64,000 nt of DNA from sequence record OP991903.1; one strand, 5' to 3'. This document shows, piece by piece, positions 54,778-61,506 of the stretch. Position numbers and translations under genes: made by a program. The first letter of the stretch is position 1; each line of letters begins with the position of its first letter. The notes beneath the pieces are model-generated. The model made no database searches. It saw nothing but the letters and a program-made list of their open reading frames with translations, and was not told the origin of the DNA.

Positions 54778-55366
54778 ACCCGAAGAAGTGGAACTGACGC
54801 CTCCCTTAGAACCTGAGGATACGTCATTCCTTGACTATATCCTTACCGAGTACACGATGGAAGAGTTACCCAAACTCGACATCGACATCTTCCGTGCTCG
54901 TTATCTTCCATACCTCGCCGGTGACCTGGATTCGAAAGATTCGGTGGCTGCCCTGCGTATGTGGGAAGCGGAAGTGTCAAAGAACGCCCGCCGCCCAGTA
55001 TTGATTGTGGACAAAGCCGGTAACCACCTGTATACCGTGCCACCCATTACCGGTACGGTGCAGACGCGTCAGACAGGGAACCCCCATTCAATCGAATCCC
55101 GTACCCGTATGATGCAAGCGCAGATGAACCGCCTGGTGTCATTCGGTATCCGTGCGCAGAAAGAGATGTTCAATAATCTCTCCCAAAGTGATGCGCAGCA
55201 GAAACAATGGGCATTGGACTGGTACAAAATCCTGAAAGACTTTGGTTACCTTGACGGGAAACCAAAGACGGGGATACTCGGTCCGGGCAGTAAAGGGGCT
55301 ACGGTAGTTAACGCGACTGAGGATTTCGAAATTGGCGACGTCGACTTTGTTGAAGACGATTTCTGA
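54770..55366 (+). CDS. Conserved hypothetical protein
   Basis: 198 aa, GAGGA RBS. Confidence 0.7.
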   Translation: MTEPEEVELTPPLEPEDTSFLDYILTEYTMEELPKLDIDIFRARYLPYLAGDLDSKDSVAALRMWEAEVSKNARRPVLIVDKAGNHLYTVPPITGTVQTRQTGNPHSIESRTRMMQAQMNRLVSFGIRAQKEMFNNLSQSDAQQKQWALDWYKILKDFGYLDGKPKTGILGPGSKGATVVNATEDFEIGDVDFVEDDF

Positions 55367-55370
55367 GTGG

Positions 55371-56477
55371 TTGCGTATCTTTGTGTTCAGTGACCCACAT
55401 TTCGGGCACAATCGTACGCCATCCCTGTCAACGTTAGCTGCGGTTCGCCGGTATTTCCCGGATAGCCCCGAAACCGCCGTGTACGACATCTGTTTCATCC
55501 CTGGCGACTTCTTTGACCATTTGCTTACCATGTCAGACGAAGACGTCTACGCGGCGCAGATGGCCATGGCGCACGTCCTGCGTGTGTGTGCAAAGTACAA
55601 CATCAAACTGCGTATCCTGGAAGGCACGCGCTCCCATGACCGCGGACAGTCAAAGCATTTCCTTTGGTTGAACGAAGCCATGGAAACAAACTGTGATGTA
55701 AAGTACTTCACCACCATGACGCTGGACTACATGGAAGAGTACGACCTGAACGTGTTGTACATTCCTGATGAGTACCACCCCGAAGCCGAACAGACTTATC
55801 AGCAAGCGAAAGAGCTGCTGCATTCGCGTGGCCTGGCTAAAGCTGACCTGTCTATTATGCACGGAGCATGGTTACACCAGTTGCAAGGACACCAGTCCCC
55901 TGCGTATCACGATGCAGAGAAATGGTCTGAACTGGTAACGATGGCAATCCTTTCTGGGCATGTCCATACCTTCTCGCGTTTTCTGAAACACATCTCCATC
56001 GGTTCAACGAACCGTTGTGGGCACGGAGAAGAAGAAGCAAAAGGGTTCCTGGACATTACCTACCGAAATAAAGTGGAGCACGAGTTCCGGTTTATTGAGA
56101 ATCAGCTGGCGAAAAAGTACGTGACCCTCGCAGTCTATGACTTTACCGTCACGGACATTGCCCAGTTAATTGAAGGACAGAACTTACCGAAAGGGAGTGC
56201 TATCCGACTGGAGCACGGAGCCACTGACCCCATGCGGGCGATTCTCGAAGAACTCCAGGACTTGTACCAGGATTACATCTTAACGTCGATAGAGAAGGGC
56301 GGTAAAAAAGACAACAAGGTTAACACCGGTTTCAAGTTGTTGAACGTGGGCAATGCGGTTACCCCGCTCACGGAAGAGAACCTGGTCGGGTTGTTGACCG
56401 AGCACCTGCAAAGTACCGGAGAAGCTTCTGGACGAATCAATCACGCGGTGAACTTGGTCCGCGGCGTAATGCACTGA
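55371..56477 (+). CDS. sbcD: SbcD/Mre11-family metallophosphoesterase nuclease
   Basis: Probable TTG start; FSDPHFG, PGDFFD, EGTRSHD, IMHG and SGHVH phosphoesterase motifs. Confidence 0.85.
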   Translation: MRIFVFSDPHFGHNRTPSLSTLAAVRRYFPDSPETAVYDICFIPGDFFDHLLTMSDEDVYAAQMAMAHVLRVCAKYNIKLRILEGTRSHDRGQSKHFLWLNEAMETNCDVKYFTTMTLDYMEEYDLNVLYIPDEYHPEAEQTYQQAKELLHSRGLAKADLSIMHGAWLHQLQGHQSPAYHDAEKWSELVTMAILSGHVHTFSRFLKHISIGSTNRCGHGEEEAKGFLDITYRNKVEHEFRFIENQLAKKYVTLAVYDFTVTDIAQLIEGQNLPKGSAIRLEHGATDPMRAILEELQDLYQDYILTSIEKGGKKDNKVNTGFKLLNVGNAVTPLTEENLVGLLTEHLQSTGEASGRINHAVNLVRGVMH

Positions 56478-56541: not shown

Positions 56542-57402
56542 ATGGCAGCAGACCCGTATGACATATTGGCCAAGCGTGCTACCGGTGAACTTCCGTTATC
56601 CATCGGCACGTCCATGGCCATCGAAGCATTGAAAGAACCTGCGGTGTATGAGAAGTACGATACACTGTGGATTAACATTCGTACGCTGTGGCGTAACATC
56701 TACGACGCCATTGAACGCGAAGACCGGGAACGGATGATTAAACCGCCGTCCCCTGCACAAATGGACGCCCACTATCGTCAAATCTGTAAGGCGATGGCGG
56801 ACACCATGAAGGAAGAACTGCAACAGATACGCGGCTTCCTGGACGGTAAGTTGAAAGGGGTACGTGTGTACCACCTGGGGTACAAAGACCTCGCCAAGAA
56901 GTACCCAATGGCGATTCTGCGTGTTCCAACAACCCCGTTGCAACAGCAGTACGCCGACCTGATGGAACGCACACTGGACTACGTGTTAATGGAAGATGCG
57001 GACACGTTAATCGAACAGGATAAAGGAAGCGAACTTCGGGGTGAACAGACCAAGTCGCTGATTATTACCCATTGTCCGGTTGACCTGCTCTCCCGTACCA
57101 AGTTTAACCAGTTGCGTTTACTGGAATCCCATACCGGTGCCATCAAGTCCAAAAGTCAGTGGTCCACCAAACTGACGGAAGGTAAAGAGATGAAGATTGT
57201 TCCTTTCAACTACTTTACTATCCAGGTGTTTGGTGACGGTGGGGTTCACTTCAATCGTTGGGCAATTAAAGCCCGACGTGAACTGCTCGAAGTGGCCACC
57301 TCGGCCAAGTGGACCCCGGTTACCACCATGGAAAAAATCAAGTATAACTTGAAGGGAATGAAGGACCAATTCCTGGCGAAGCAGCTCCAGCGCCTGCTGT
57401 GA
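56542..57402 (+). CDS. Conserved nucleus-block protein, degenerate FEN/5'-3' exonuclease-like fold
   Basis: 286 aa, AAGGAG RBS; LWINIRTL, IITHCPVDL and IQVFGD align loosely with PIN/H3TH motifs. Confidence 0.5.
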   Translation: MAADPYDILAKRATGELPLSIGTSMAIEALKEPAVYEKYDTLWINIRTLWRNIYDAIEREDRERMIKPPSPAQMDAHYRQICKAMADTMKEELQQIRGFLDGKLKGVRVYHLGYKDLAKKYPMAILRVPTTPLQQQYADLMERTLDYVLMEDADTLIEQDKGSELRGEQTKSLIITHCPVDLLSRTKFNQLRLLESHTGAIKSKSQWSTKLTEGKEMKIVPFNYFTIQVFGDGGVHFNRWAIKARRELLEVATSAKWTPVTTMEKIKYNLKGMKDQFLAKQLQRLL

Positions 57403-57470
57403 GACATTTTTTACGAACGGGTCTTATCTAATGTGGACCCCTTATCAAAACCTAAGAAGGCGAATGAACA

Positions 57471-58250
57471 ATGGCTGATAACAAGCTGAACCGACCGACG
57501 CGTTTACTGGATGACTGGAACATGCGTCTGTTCGCGGACCCCCTGAATGGCGGTGACAAACAACCGTTCATGTTCTGGGACTTCCGTTACGAAGAAAACG
57601 GTAAAGTGGCTATCCCGCACATCGGTGTTAACCTGCGCACCGATGATAAAAACAGTCGCATCGACTTCTATACCGACCCGGAAAACCTCCAGATTATTCT
57701 GGACGAGCTTCACGCCATTGCCTCTGGTACCCGTGATTTCTTCAAAGTGGGTAACATGGTGCTGTGGAAGTTCGGTAAGAAGCTGGATAAGAAAGAGCTG
57801 GACGTGTCACTGGTTATCATGCGTGACAACGATGGCGTGTTCTTCGGTCTGGCGCAACAGGGTCGTCCAAGCGTGAAGTTCTACTTCAAGCCGGGTCGTG
57901 ACGTTGTCTACCAGGCGAAAGACGGTTCTATCCTGCCGAACAACGAAGCCTCCATGTTGGTGGCACGTGCGAAAGCGAAAATCTTCGAACGTCAGTTCTT
58001 CCGTCTGATTGACGCCGGTTACATGGACCGCGATGAGGTAAAGGTTGCCTCAGAGAACAAACGCAAGAATGCCTTCTCCGGCCGGAACGGTGGTGGGAAC
58101 GGCGGCCAGGGCGGCGGCGGTTGGGGCAAACCTCAACAGAACCAGCAACAACAAGCTCCTCAACAGCAGGCTACAGGCGGCGGATGGGGCGGCGAAACTG
58201 GTGGTGGTAGCGCCACTGGCGGCGATTTCGATTCCGATATCCCGTTCTGA
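57471..58250 (+). CDS. chmC: Probable ChmC nucleus-associated nucleic-acid-binding protein with Gly/Gln tail ending DFDSDIPF
   Basis: 259 aa; position two genes upstream of the PicA-position gene and directly upstream of the gp68-like gene; disordered G/Q-rich C-terminus. Identity rests on synteny. Confidence 0.55.
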   Translation: MADNKLNRPTRLLDDWNMRLFADPLNGGDKQPFMFWDFRYEENGKVAIPHIGVNLRTDDKNSRIDFYTDPENLQIILDELHAIASGTRDFFKVGNMVLWKFGKKLDKKELDVSLVIMRDNDGVFFGLAQQGRPSVKFYFKPGRDVVYQAKDGSILPNNEASMLVARAKAKIFERQFFRLIDAGYMDRDEVKVASENKRKNAFSGRNGGGNGGQGGGGWGKPQQNQQQQAPQQQATGGGWGGETGGGSATGGDFDSDIPF

Positions 58251-58291
58251 TTCCCTTCGTCTGAGCATGTAGCAAAGACAGCACAGCGATG

Positions 58292-58317
58292 ACCGTCGCG
58301 GCTAAGGCCGCGACGGT
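58292..58317 (+). terminator. GC-rich 11-bp hairpin after chmC-position gene
   Basis: ACCGTCGCGGC-TAAG-GCCGCGACGGT followed by TTATT. Confidence 0.55.
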
Positions 58318-58346
58318 TTATTCCGAATCTTAAAAAGACTCGAGTA

Positions 58347-58362: not shown

Positions 58363-58410
58363 AGCATTGGCTTTATTGACAATGGTTATACTTTTTAAGG
58401 AGAAGTGTCA

Positions 58411-59958
58411 ATGAGAATCCGCTCTGATGTTGAGCTGCTCGGTGAAACCAAAGCGGTTATAATCGAGCATGGGAGTGAACAGATTGTTTACAACCTTGGG
58501 TACTATTCGAAAATCCGGGCAGGCGACATCAACGATACTTTCCGCGACATTAACAATTATTGGGAATGGCGTGAGAAGATGGGGGATGATGAAACCCGTG
58601 AAGTCTTTGCGTTGTTTAAAGAAGCAGCAGAATCGTTGAATAACACGATTAACCAAACATACCGCTTCCGTGAAGTACGGGACGCGGTGAAAAAATTAAT
58701 GGCATTGCATCCGGTTGACCTGATGTGCCATTGGGTGAAAACGCACAGCGACATCCGTTTCCCGGATACGTTGGCGACCACCCTAAACGATGGACACCGG
58801 GTAGAGCAAACCTACCTGGAACCTGAGTACCATGACTTGACAGCATTGTCGGTGGTACTGAAAGTGATGTTACCTATCTGGGGGGAATACCTCGGGATGC
58901 GTAACTCAATAACCGATACGTTCCCAGAGAAACGAGCGTTGGGGTTAGTGGAACAAACGGTACTGGCTGAGAGCAATGCTTATCAGCGTCTGGAAGAATT
59001 CGTGAGTGCAACGTTGGAGCACAAAGGAATCATTTCCGGCACCAGTACGTTACTGCAAGGGATTGGGACGTTGGACATGCCAGACTGGATGTTCAGTCAA
59101 TGTGTTGTTGACCGTTTGACCCAGATTCGTCTGTCGCACAAAGACGATGACCAGGAGAAGACGGGGAACGTCATTGCGAACTTGTTCAACTACATTGACA
59201 CCCGTGTCAAAGCCGTAGAAGAACGCCAGGGGTTCCGTGTCCGCGATAAAGAGATAGACCGTGGTGGCAAAAACGAAGAGGACAATACATCCACAGCGGA
59301 GAACCATACATTACGTGCTAACGTATCGGAGGTAACAGAAGCCATCTTCGACTTCTATACAGAAGACGACAGGGCGAATGCACTGGCGATAAAGCCGGAC
59401 ATTGACCTGGAGATGGTGCGTCATCAAATCAACATGAACATGGCAAGGAAATCTTTCAACCCGAAAGAGTTTCAGATGCGTCTGGCAGGGTTAATTACCA
59501 AGCCGGTCGTTACGCCACGTTCTTACGGATACATCAACCGAGATGGTACGGTCAAGCTGATGTCGATTGCACAGGTCGTCTGTCATGAGTGGGGGTTCTC
59601 CACCATCGCAGAATTGATTGGCGCAAGCGAAGCTCGACGCCGTGACCCCTCTCTAGGGGACAACAAATTCGGCCGTGTTCAAACCAAAGATTACCAGAAC
59701 TCGGCGCTGGAGAAGTTGCTCCCTTATCGACGTACCGTGAAGCTGAACAAACAAGGTAACCGCACCACGTCTAAGAACCCGGCGGTGATTGCAATTGAAG
59801 CAATCATGGCGGCGTGCTCAGACCACTGCTGGTCACCACAAGTTGTTGATGCTATCCACGATGAATCAGAGATGATTCGCGTCGAAGACAGTTGCTACAT
59901 CGTGCCGATGAATTTCCGCCAGGTGTTAGCAGACTTTTACATTAAACTCAATTCCTAA
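58411..59958 (+). CDS. Non-virion RNAP promoter-specificity subunit (phiKZ gp68-like)
   Basis: ~515 aa, AAGGAG RBS; size and position match gp68; LSVVLKVMLPIWGEY motif. Confidence 0.65.
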   Translation: MRIRSDVELLGETKAVIIEHGSEQIVYNLGYYSKIRAGDINDTFRDINNYWEWREKMGDDETREVFALFKEAAESLNNTINQTYRFREVRDAVKKLMALHPVDLMCHWVKTHSDIRFPDTLATTLNDGHRVEQTYLEPEYHDLTALSVVLKVMLPIWGEYLGMRNSITDTFPEKRALGLVEQTVLAESNAYQRLEEFVSATLEHKGIISGTSTLLQGIGTLDMPDWMFSQCVVDRLTQIRLSHKDDDQEKTGNVIANLFNYIDTRVKAVEERQGFRVRDKEIDRGGKNEEDNTSTAENHTLRANVSEVTEAIFDFYTEDDRANALAIKPDIDLEMVRHQINMNMARKSFNPKEFQMRLAGLITKPVVTPRSYGYINRDGTVKLMSIAQVVCHEWGFSTIAELIGASEARRRDPSLGDNKFGRVQTKDYQNSALEKLLPYRRTVKLNKQGNRTTSKNPAVIAIEAIMAACSDHCWSPQVVDAIHDESEMIRVEDSCYIVPMNFRQVLADFYIKLNS

Positions 59959-59973
59959 TAACGAGGCCTATAA

Positions 59974-61506
59974 ATGGAACCGCGTGTACTCGAAGCAACC
60001 TTCTACGTAACTTCCGGTCAAGAAGACCAGTACGGTCGTCACTACGTCCCGAACCGTCGTTCTGACCATGTACGTGAAACCTTCCTGCGTGAAACCAATG
60101 ACGGACGTAATCTGGATGCCTCCACCTGCGCCCGTGCCGTAGGTGAAATCCTGGAACTGCGTGCCGATGTGGGTCGTAATGACATTATTCAGATTGCCAA
60201 CGGTTGGGATGAAGAACGTCTGGCGTTCATCATCGTGGTCCTGACCGAAGACTACGCAGGGTCTTCCTGCCGCCAGGTACTGACCGGCTTTACTGACAAA
60301 GCTGACCTGTCGTTGTCTGGCGAGATGGACCCGGATACCGTACTGTACATCAACAACACGTTCACCATCCGTGATGAAGAAATTGAAACGGGTCGCGGCC
60401 GTCGTCGTGGTAGCCGTATGGAATCCAGTGAGTACATTATCCGTGGCCGTCGTGCAACGGAACGTAACCTCATTGGCGTACAGAACCATGATACTCTGAT
60501 TCGTCCACAGGACATCTTCTTCCAGAAGTCCGAAGCACAAACCGTGGGACGTTTCGGTGGCGCTGATGCGTACAACGATTCCCGTACGAACCTGTCCGGT
60601 GATTTTAAGACAGCCCGTCGTATCCACAACAACCCAGCGAACTACCTGTCCGATATCATTCGTACCGGTGTAACGGCAGAAACCGTTGACCAGAACGAAC
60701 GCGGTACCCGTCATTCTGACGATAACCGTATGGACGAAGAAATGGAACGTCAGGACGACCTCAACCCGAGCGAACGTGCAGCAGCGATGTTGCGTGGGAC
60801 CGAGTTGCACCGTAATGAACTGTTCCGTAACTTCCTGTCTCGTACCGAATACGAACGCAATGCCGAAATCACATTCTCTGAATTCCAGGACTGTGTTGAC
60901 TGGCCGCGTGATGTACGTGCAATGATGGTAGGCTTCGGCTCTGCTCGTCATACCGACACCAACCGTGTTCGTCGTGGTGATACCAACGAATGGCGTGGCG
61001 CGAACAACGTGACCATGGCCGCTGAGATGATTTCGAAGACCTTACCTGCTCTGGTCATGAACAACTTCATCTCGTCTGCCATCATCGAAATGACCAACGA
61101 AACTCTCGACGGTCAAATTCGTTGCAGCGTTATCAACGCAATGCCGCTGATTCGTGACATGGATATCTCCCGTTACGAACAGGCGCTGGAACTGCGTCTG
61201 GAAACCGACCTGGGTCTGCTGCTGTCTCGTAACAACCAGCTGCCTTTCAACATGTCCGTGAACATCCGTGTTACTACTGACATGCTGATTAAAATCTCCG
61301 TTGACGGTAGTCCAATGGAACCGTTTAACTCACCGGTCTTCTGTGATGGCCTGTTGTCTCCGATGAAAGCAAATGACAGTAGTGTCCTGCAAAACATCGT
61401 GAACGACATGGACGACCTGATTACCGCCGCGATTGACCATAACAGCCGTAGCCGCGACACCCGTCGTGAAGAAACGTCTGCGTCACGCTTCCTGCTCGAT
61501 TTATAA
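59974..61506 (+). CDS. picA: Probable PicA/Imp1 nuclear import factor (phiKZ gp69-like)
   Basis: 510 aa directly downstream of the gp68-like gene; NGWDEERLAF, RPQDIF and PVFCDGLLSP motifs. Identity mainly from synteny. Confidence 0.6.
   Translation: MEPRVLEATFYVTSGQEDQYGRHYVPNRRSDHVRETFLRETNDGRNLDASTCARAVGEILELRADVGRNDIIQIANGWDEERLAFIIVVLTEDYAGSSCRQVLTGFTDKADLSLSGEMDPDTVLYINNTFTIRDEEIETGRGRRRGSRMESSEYIIRGRRATERNLIGVQNHDTLIRPQDIFFQKSEAQTVGRFGGADAYNDSRTNLSGDFKTARRIHNNPANYLSDIIRTGVTAETVDQNERGTRHSDDNRMDEEMERQDDLNPSERAAAMLRGTELHRNELFRNFLSRTEYERNAEITFSEFQDCVDWPRDVRAMMVGFGSARHTDTNRVRRGDTNEWRGANNVTMAAEMISKTLPALVMNNFISSAIIEMTNETLDGQIRCSVINAMPLIRDMDISRYEQALELRLETDLGLLLSRNNQLPFNMSVNIRVTTDMLIKISVDGSPMEPFNSPVFCDGLLSPMKANDSSVLQNIVNDMDDLITAAIDHNSRSRDTRREETSASRFLLDL

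Follow-up and report, generated by a model that had tools for sequence, protein, structure and literature searches.

An SSB-type C-terminal tip on a predicted Whirly/PUR-like ChmC/Imp6 orthologue of an Erwinia jumbo phage, and its possible role in docking and self-regulation

The window analysed here, the whole 64,000-nucleotide stretch taken from record OP991903.1, is 100% identical to Erwinia phage vB_Ea277G (OP991903) and 99.4% identical to phage PhiEaH1 (NC_023610, genus Iapetusvirus). The RefSeq annotation of PhiEaH1 contains a nuclear shell protein, PhuZ, split multisubunit RNA polymerases, and a split DNA polymerase; the source is therefore a nucleus-forming (chimallivirus-type) jumbo phage. 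The gene under study is a complete open reading frame (ORF) that corresponds to PhiEaH1 gp015 (YP_009010068), where it is labelled as hypothetical. Judged by core homology and conserved gene order, its product is an orthologue of ChmC/Imp6, the protein known as gp61 in PhiPA3, gp67 in phiKZ, and gp176 in Goslar. As read from its sequence, the protein has the three-part layout of a bacterial single-stranded DNA-binding (SSB) protein, namely a binding core, a disordered linker, and an acidic tip, built on a different fold. It seems reasonably probable that this tip works as an SSB-like tethered docking and self-regulating motif, whose partners are likeliest encoded by the phage itself.

Profile comparisons assigned the protein to the ChmC family. 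Alignment A1 matched phiKZ gp67 by hhalign with a probability of 99.05% (E 1.9e-18). A hidden Markov model (HMM) of the core, from which the tail was excluded, recovered the orthologues of phiKZ (1.6e-21), PhiPA3 (1.7e-20), and Goslar (2.2e-14), and also found the same-locus orthologues in PCH45, RAY, RSF1, and pVa-21. The window protein itself matched PCH45 QFP93121, which is listed as a gp61 homologue (PMC10643120). The gene order gp65-66-67-68-69 is the same in the window as in phiKZ, PhiPA3, and Goslar; the gene lies downstream of chmA and is flanked by the homologue of gp66 on one side and those of gp68/gp69 on the other, which is the position of chmC. The original prediction had placed the protein at the ChmC position, and the hhalign result, the core HMM, and the gp65-gp69 synteny all agree with that placement. 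In a 25%-identity alignment, three of the six basic residues that were mutated in PhiPA3 and are needed there for RNA/ssDNA binding (K30, R35, R44, K48, K59, and R63) align with basic residues of the window protein (K30, R39, and R63); K45, R56, and K60 are further basic residues near the PhiPA3 RNA-binding positions.

The N-terminal domain had been thought not to be an oligonucleotide/oligosaccharide-binding (OB) fold, and structure prediction upheld this view. In the AlphaFold2 (AF2) model, the core has a strand-strand-strand-helix, four strands plus helix topology, followed by a further helix. The predicted local distance difference test (pLDDT) values, averaged over 10-residue blocks, are mostly 89-96 from residue ~60 to 170. 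The recurring fold matches of the core in the PDB are MRP1/2 (2gje, 2gia), Pur-alpha (3k44, 5fgp), human PURA, and the plant Whirly proteins (4koo, 4kop, 1l3a, 3n1h); no classical OB-fold SSB was among them. Strong fold matches were found in BFVD, to proteins of the chimalliviruses Eowyn, Miami, and EL. The core is thus predicted to be of the Whirly/PUR-like single-strand nucleic-acid-binding type, the same fold class as described for ChmC; the agreement is at the level of topology, without strong structural statistics. The Pfam scan gave no SSB domain, and no Whirly or PUR model matched at E <= 1. The core had no significant match in the PDB sequence search, either with the protein or with the family profile.

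A linker rich in glycine, glutamine, and tryptophan, ending DFDSDIPF, had been reported at 58070-58250. The translation is exact: this segment encodes residues ~201-259 and the stop codon, and the protein ends GGDFDSDIPF. The linker and the tip (residues 207-259) have pLDDT values below 50 in the AF2 model and are disordered. The disordered C-terminal region and the acidic end described for ChmC are thus both present in the window protein. A six-frame scan of the whole phage genome (the window plus the PhiEaH1 loci) covered 1,541 ORFs with a length of 60 aa or more, of which only chmC (the window and PhiEaH1 copies) has an acidic-[ILMVF]-P-[FWMLY] ending; the sole other ORF matching the pattern ends RRIPM, which is not acidic. 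A chance origin of the tip is excluded, because this ending is unique in the genome and homologues keep the tip while their linkers vary without constraint on length or sequence.

The likeness to bacterial SSB lies in the linker and the tip. The enterobacterial SSB model of NCBIfam, NF006533, matched only residues 192-259, which were aligned to positions 103-177 of the 177 model positions (E 0.0098, 15.8 bits vs a family cut-off of 260). SSB chains in the PDB were matched solely through the tail, with non-significant E-values of 0.36-8.6. The C-terminal tip of SSB (SSB-Ct) has been defined as DDDIPF (PMC5872125). E. coli SSB (PDB 1eqq/4mz9) and 7f2n end NEPPMDFDDDIPF. With E. coli SSB standing in for the Erwinia amylovora SSB, DFDSDIPF is identical to the last eight residues (DFDDDIPF) at 7/8 positions, and DSDIPF to DDDIPF at 5/6. 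The relatives P0008 and P0009 end EPPMDFDDAIPF, and 11 of their last 12 residues are as in E. coli SSB. Of the features that make up a bacterial SSB, the window protein has the disordered G/Q/P-type linker and the terminal acidic tip; the OB-fold domain is absent. The SSB-type character of linker and tip, as originally proposed, is supported by the NF006533 tail match, the 7/8 identity, and the end of a prophage SSB. That the phage acquired a canonical OB-fold SSB of the bacterial type is extremely improbable: only the tail speaks for such an origin, and the confident AF2 model shows no OB barrel in the core, which is a homologue of phiKZ gp67.

No DNA-level sign of a recent capture from ssb was found; the window tail gave a single 29-nt match (E 7), to the 3' end of a prophage ssb. 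A tblastn search of plasmids with the tail had no match, since this sequence is masked by the low-complexity filter. The tail DNA of P0009 matched the ssb 3' ends in ~1,900 E. coli genomes, with 80-85% identity over 40-54 nt and marginal E-values. Such matches are what shared amino acids with different codons would give, and are therefore not a sign of recent capture. The SSB-type tip may have arisen by ancient capture or by convergence.

The tail had been taken as special to this protein. A survey of the orthologues did not support this: the tip is found in most family members. A profile search covering 1.84 billion cluster representatives gave 812 family members at E <= 0.001, and the tip counts were taken on 162 diverse members. 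In 147/162 of these, the end consists of an acidic run with a hydrophobic last residue; 123/162 have a hydrophobic-Pro-hydrophobic ending, and 60/162 end in [IL]PF. Proline stands at position -2 in 126/162 (78%), aspartate at -4 in 114/162, and an aliphatic residue at -3 in ~85%. The last residue is F in 87, W in 22, M in 20, and L in 11 of the 162, and it is aromatic or large hydrophobic in 90%. The C-terminus-anchored entropy is 1.5-2.6 bits at positions -1 to -6 vs 3.0-3.5 bits at -7 to -20. This entropy dip and the residue counts indicate that the tip is under purifying selection across the family, and that the linker (G 27%, N 14%, Q 10%) is constrained only in composition. The position-specific proline and the terminal aromatic residue suggest a pocket rather than mere charge. 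The last three residues agreed between nearest neighbours with a concordance of 0.30, vs 0.10 in shuffles. Tip variants are thus inherited by clade, which is compatible with a co-evolving receptor.

Closer relatives keep the tip more strictly. Of 15 homologues taken from a protein collection clustered at 90%, with identities as low as 26%, almost all have the end xFDxDIPF. In alignment A1, F253 and P258 are invariant and D254 is nearly invariant, and the linkers vary in length and sequence. The linker of the window protein contains GGGWG elements at 58110-58125 and 58179-58196, which are kept among close relatives (alignment A1 columns ~230-275). Tryptophan occurs in the linker of 84/162 family members, and GWG in 19/162. 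These GGGWG/Trp elements may be aromatic "stickers" for condensation or base stacking.

The ends are more variable among the named phages. PCH45 ChmC ends YDEDIPF and RAY ChmC ends DFADDLPF. In the Pseudomonas phages, a residue is inserted before the final F (phiKZ, FDEDMPSF; PhiPA3, FDDEIPNF). The end is divergent in Goslar, an E. coli phage (AFDGLAF), and the RSF1 and pVa-21 proteins end DFDDISF and LDDYLP, respectively. The ChrisDB gp45 at the same locus position (L013:886-1530) ends NFDEFL after a G/N-rich tail; the core HMM did not pick it up at E 1e-3, and it is therefore a very divergent or a replaced ChmC. The degenerate tips of the experimental models may explain why the end has been described only as an "S/D/E-rich electronegative cluster". 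On the family counts, the SSB-type tip is a trait of most of the ChmC family, and it is apparently unreported. "SSB" is absent from the ChmC paper (PMC11077065) and from two recent reviews, and a ChmC-SSB pairing was not found in the literature searchable to late 2026.

The features of the locus are listed in Table 1. The hairpin on the 3' side of chmC has a folding energy of -25.1 kcal/mol (z -4.0), and 0/200 shuffles were equally stable; a simple consensus terminator scan did not pick it up at 58291-58318. A 327-aa open frame on the minus strand (59968-60951), antisense to the PicA/Imp1 homologue, is most likely spurious. The block is interrupted in some relatives. Two small genes are inserted between chmC and the gp68 homologue in phage RAY (L010:945-1572), and a 211-aa gene is inserted at the same place in a metagenomic relative (L014:4465-5100). 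[quoted passage not shown] Elsewhere in NC_023610, at 199522-200913 (L006:25523-26914), the gp225 and gp226 coding sequences (CDSs) overlap nearly fully on opposite strands, and at least one of them is probably an annotation artefact.

Table 1. Features of the chmC locus, in window coordinates.
Feature	Coordinates	Strand	Evidence or remarks
SbcD-like nuclease, homologue of phiKZ gp65/PhiPA3 gp59	55332..56477	+	PHROG 100, E 4e-54; start of the block
phiKZ gp66 homologue, upstream neighbour	56542..57402	+	BLASTP 32% identity, E 1e-36; PHROG 3229
Shine-Dalgarno-like AAGAAGG	57454..57460	+	10 nt 5' of the chmC ATG; inferred, read from the sequence
chmC/imp6 orthologue, complete CDS	57471..58250	+	ATG start, 259 aa + stop; PHROG 3284, E 7e-62
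Folded core, predicted Whirly/PUR-like, residues 1-206	57471..58088	+	AF2; terminal helix 187-206
G/Q/N-rich disordered linker, residues 207-251 (45 aa), two GGGWG elements	58089..58223	+	pLDDT < 50
Acidic tip DFDSDIPF, SSB-Ct type, residues 252-259	58224..58247	+	extreme C-terminus
Terminator-like 12-bp G+C-rich hairpin, then UUUAUU	58291..58318	+	3' of chmC
phiKZ gp68 homologue (nvRNAP subunit), downstream neighbour	58405..59958	+	tblastn PHIKZ068 and nvRNAP-annotated genes; PHROG 3209
phiKZ gp69 homologue (PicA/Imp1, nuclear import factor)	59974..61506	+	BLASTP 26% identity over 476 residues, E 5e-33

Homotetramer formation, RNA binding, condensates, and PicA/Imp1 binding have been reported for the PhiPA3 and phiKZ proteins only. 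ChmC is a Whirly-fold homotetramer required for infection (PMC11077065). The PhiPA3 protein binds single-stranded RNA (ssRNA) with a dissociation constant of 58 nM and single-stranded DNA (ssDNA) with one of 184 nM, the latter cooperatively (Hill coefficient 2.4), which is a ~3-fold preference for RNA (PMC11077065). In cells it binds phage mRNAs, it forms condensates via its disordered C-terminal region, and its knock-down leads to defects in mRNA localisation and protein level (PMC11077065). When residues 204-251 were deleted from PhiPA3 ChmC, condensates were lost with or without RNA and the nuclear-shell localisation was lost; the tetramer and RNA binding were kept (PMC11077065). The end was interpreted as an electronegative cluster that suppresses non-specific RNA binding (PMC11077065). 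As Imp6, phiKZ gp67 binds the import factor Imp1/PicA (gp69) directly in a 2:1 ratio (bioRxiv 10.1101/2024.03.27.586873). ChmC is made early and in high amounts. Proximity labelling by nuclear UvsX marks it, and a pull-down recovered it together with an RNase H-clamp described as a DNA polymerase subunit; PhiPA3 ChmC is found at the shell and partly in the cytoplasm. The PhiPA3 ChmC pull-down names ChmB, RNA polymerase subunits, and ribosomal proteins, and not the classic SSB partners.

Bacterial SSB offers a model of how such a tail could work. In E. coli SSB, condensation requires contacts between the intrinsically disordered linkers and is enhanced by contacts of the tip with the OB fold, for which tip and ssDNA compete; partners concentrate in the condensates (bioRxiv 10.1101/797431). 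By analogy, the tip of free ChmC would lie against the basic surface that binds nucleic acid, either on the same tetramer or on one next to it, and would there hold back non-specific binding and link molecules to one another in condensates. Once RNA or ssDNA takes up the basic face, the tip would be released, and its terminal aromatic residue and carboxylate could enter the pocket of a partner. The partners would most likely be encoded by the phage and located at the shell of the nucleus or on nucleic acid that is still being made. ChmB, PicA/Imp1, nvRNAP, the RNase H-clamp together with its DNA polymerase, and UvsX are candidates. In the enterobacterial lineage with the letter-perfect tip, cross-reaction with host SSB partners is plausible as an extra effect.

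Several considerations make a phage receptor likelier across the family. The tips tolerate a terminal W, M, or L and an inserted residue, unlike the canonical SSB-Ct; their variants are passed down within clades; the associates known so far come from the phage, namely ChmB, subunits of nvRNAP and of the virion RNA polymerase, Imp1, and the RNase H-clamp; and topoisomerase I (TopA), the only host protein known inside the phage nucleus (in phiKZ), is imported via other Imp factors.

Several points weigh against a docking and self-regulating tip on a Whirly-type ChmC. The Foldseek matches to Whirly/PUR structures are weak (E 0.026-0.1, TM-score on the target 0.35-0.45). About 9% of the family members are without the tip motif, and the studied models phiKZ, PhiPA3, and Goslar function with degenerate tips (MPSF, IPNF, and GLAF, respectively). 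P0016 and P0011 carry a 16-residue extension after IPF. In these proteins, which represent one sub-lineage (L014:3001-3807 and L015:80-886, respectively), a perfect PPMDFDxxIPF is non-terminal and is followed by the conserved APIGLQYGKMS[VL]YALA; the extension is present in two independent samples and is therefore not a sequencing error, and it would bury the C-terminal carboxylate needed for SSB-type docking. The 204-251 deletion in PhiPA3 ChmC takes out the linker and the tip jointly. Since the tip was removed too, the lost localisation could reflect lost docking instead of lost condensation. The gp67-FLAG protein, whose tag was possibly C-terminal, still bound Imp1 (bioRxiv 10.1101/2024.03.27.586873); if the tag was C-terminal, a free carboxylate is unneeded for Imp1 binding, and Imp1 is not the tip receptor. 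The partners named above are candidates, and the pocket is a putative one.

The same tip could also be read, in line with the original prediction, as a copy of the host SSB end, by which the abundant ChmC tetramer would recruit, sequester, or help import host SSB partners such as ExoI, RecQ, PriA, the Pol III chi subunit, RNase HI, Ung, and the topoisomerases. The letter-perfect tip of this lineage, with the 11/12 agreement of P0008 and P0009, fits this reading, as do the host-type SSB tips that mobile elements do carry (the prophage SSB), the partly cytoplasmic location of PhiPA3 ChmC, and the import of TopA into the phiKZ nucleus. The GFP-gp61 pull-down (Table S3 of bioRxiv 10.1101/2023.09.22.559000) also lists host proteins, including SSB (2 peptides), RecD (9), RecC (3), and topoisomerase I (3). 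However, that table has no control column and its peptide counts are low, the host hits are not discussed in the main text, and RecQ and PriA were not found in the portion of the table examined. TopA import maps to Imp1, Imp3, Imp4, and Imp5, but not to Imp6. The terminal W (22), M (20), or L (11) seen in about a third of the 162 members has no parallel in the canonical DDDIPF, the tips of the Pseudomonas phages have an extra residue ahead of the last F, and the tip diverges in Goslar, an E. coli phage. With no DNA-level sign of recent ssb capture either, mimicry of the host seems rather unlikely, and it is not favoured as the role of the tip across the family.

The two other readings concern what the protein and its tail do within the phage. 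ChmC might also be the functional SSB of chimalliviruses, a Whirly-fold replacement that coats ssDNA and organises replication and recombination enzymes via its tip. No SSB is found among the 241 annotated PhiEaH1 features, and phmmer gave no ORF that looks like an OB-fold SSB, although a single-sequence search is an insensitive method, particularly for gp32-like or gp2.5-like proteins. In a comparative study, the classic OB-fold SSB is listed as marking the jumbo phages of group 2 and not those of group 1, which is phiKZ-like (PMC7824862). The homotetramer and cooperative ssDNA binding of PhiPA3 ChmC, its early and abundant expression, its proximity to UvsX, and its recovery with the RNase H-clamp point the same way. 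The RNA preference, the mRNA binding in cells, and the mRNA-localisation and protein-level defects upon knock-down do not, nor does the location of PhiPA3 ChmC, which occupies the shell and the cytoplasm and is not spread through the whole nucleus; we would give this role a low probability. The annotated features of PhiEaH1 do include UvsX, SbcCD, a DnaB-like helicase, the split DNA polymerase, and a 526-aa RNase H, gp177, which is probably the RNase H-clamp homologue. The tail might instead be a solubilising electronegative cluster on a condensate-forming linker, with an SSB likeness that has no docking meaning. This is close to how the ChmC paper reads the end (PMC11077065), and Goslar, RSF1, pVa-21, and ChrisDB are indeed without the Pro-aromatic end. 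However, charge fails to account for the proline at -2, the aliphatic residue at -3, and the aromatic or large hydrophobic last residue, or for the position of the motif at the very end in nearly all members, and such a tail is quite improbable as the full explanation.

ChmC/Imp6 is essential, abundant, and conserved in the nucleus-forming phages, and it would link mRNA export, protein import, and the polymerases. A conserved SSB-type terminal motif would give a small, specific, and testable handle on its protein contacts. The published C-terminal deletion, interpreted only as a loss of condensation, would have to be reread with the joint removal of tip and linker in mind. The family would then be a remarkable example of how one modular design (core, disordered linker, and acidic-aromatic tip) appears on an unrelated fold. 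A more far-reaching and rather doubtful possibility is that ChmC is the single-strand-binding hub of the nucleus-forming phages, and that the letter-perfect enterobacterial tip also taps the host SSB interactome. If so, the Whirly-fold ChmC would have taken over the whole SSB design of tetramer, disordered linker, and docking tip, and its tip would organise replication, recombination, RNase H, transcription, and shell/import factors on ssRNA and ssDNA in or at the phage nucleus.

Compared with the ChmC proteins of PhiPA3, phiKZ, and Goslar, the window protein shares a homologous core, the gp65-gp69 position, the Whirly/PUR-like fold, and a disordered G/N/Q-rich region with an acidic cluster. 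The ends of these models are degenerate, whereas the window protein and its close relatives have a letter-perfect DFDxDIPF; the linker of the window protein is Q/G-rich with GGGWG, whereas those of the studied models are N/G-rich. The Whirly/PUR/MRP1-MRP2 families (4kop, 1l3a, 3k44, and 2gje) are the best-matching fold class for the core, but the resemblance is structural only, without Pfam-level membership. Proteins of this fold class bind both ssDNA and ssRNA (PMC11077065).

E. coli SSB has in common with ChmC a core that is oligomeric and binds single strands, a disordered linker of the G/Q/P-rich type, and an acidic IPF tip at a free C-terminus, and in both proteins condensation depends on the disordered region. 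However, the ChmC core is not an OB fold and has no sequence similarity to SSB, and ChmC prefers RNA and binds mRNAs. The E. coli prophage SSB WP_171877310, encoded beside an ERF recombinase, shows a tip of this kind on a mobile element, PPMDFDDDIPF after a Q/N-rich linker; prophage and plasmid SSBs are true OB-fold SSBs, whereas the window protein has another fold and comes from a nucleus-forming phage. The phage single-strand-binding proteins T7 gp2.5 and T4 gp32 have OB-fold cores and acidic C-terminal tails without the bacterial-type hydrophobic-Pro-aromatic end. Tail and ssDNA are in competition for the binding cleft, and the polymerase or helicase of the same phage is docked by the tail. 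These proteins resemble the arrangement favoured here, in which the receptor of the ChmC tip would be encoded by the phage.

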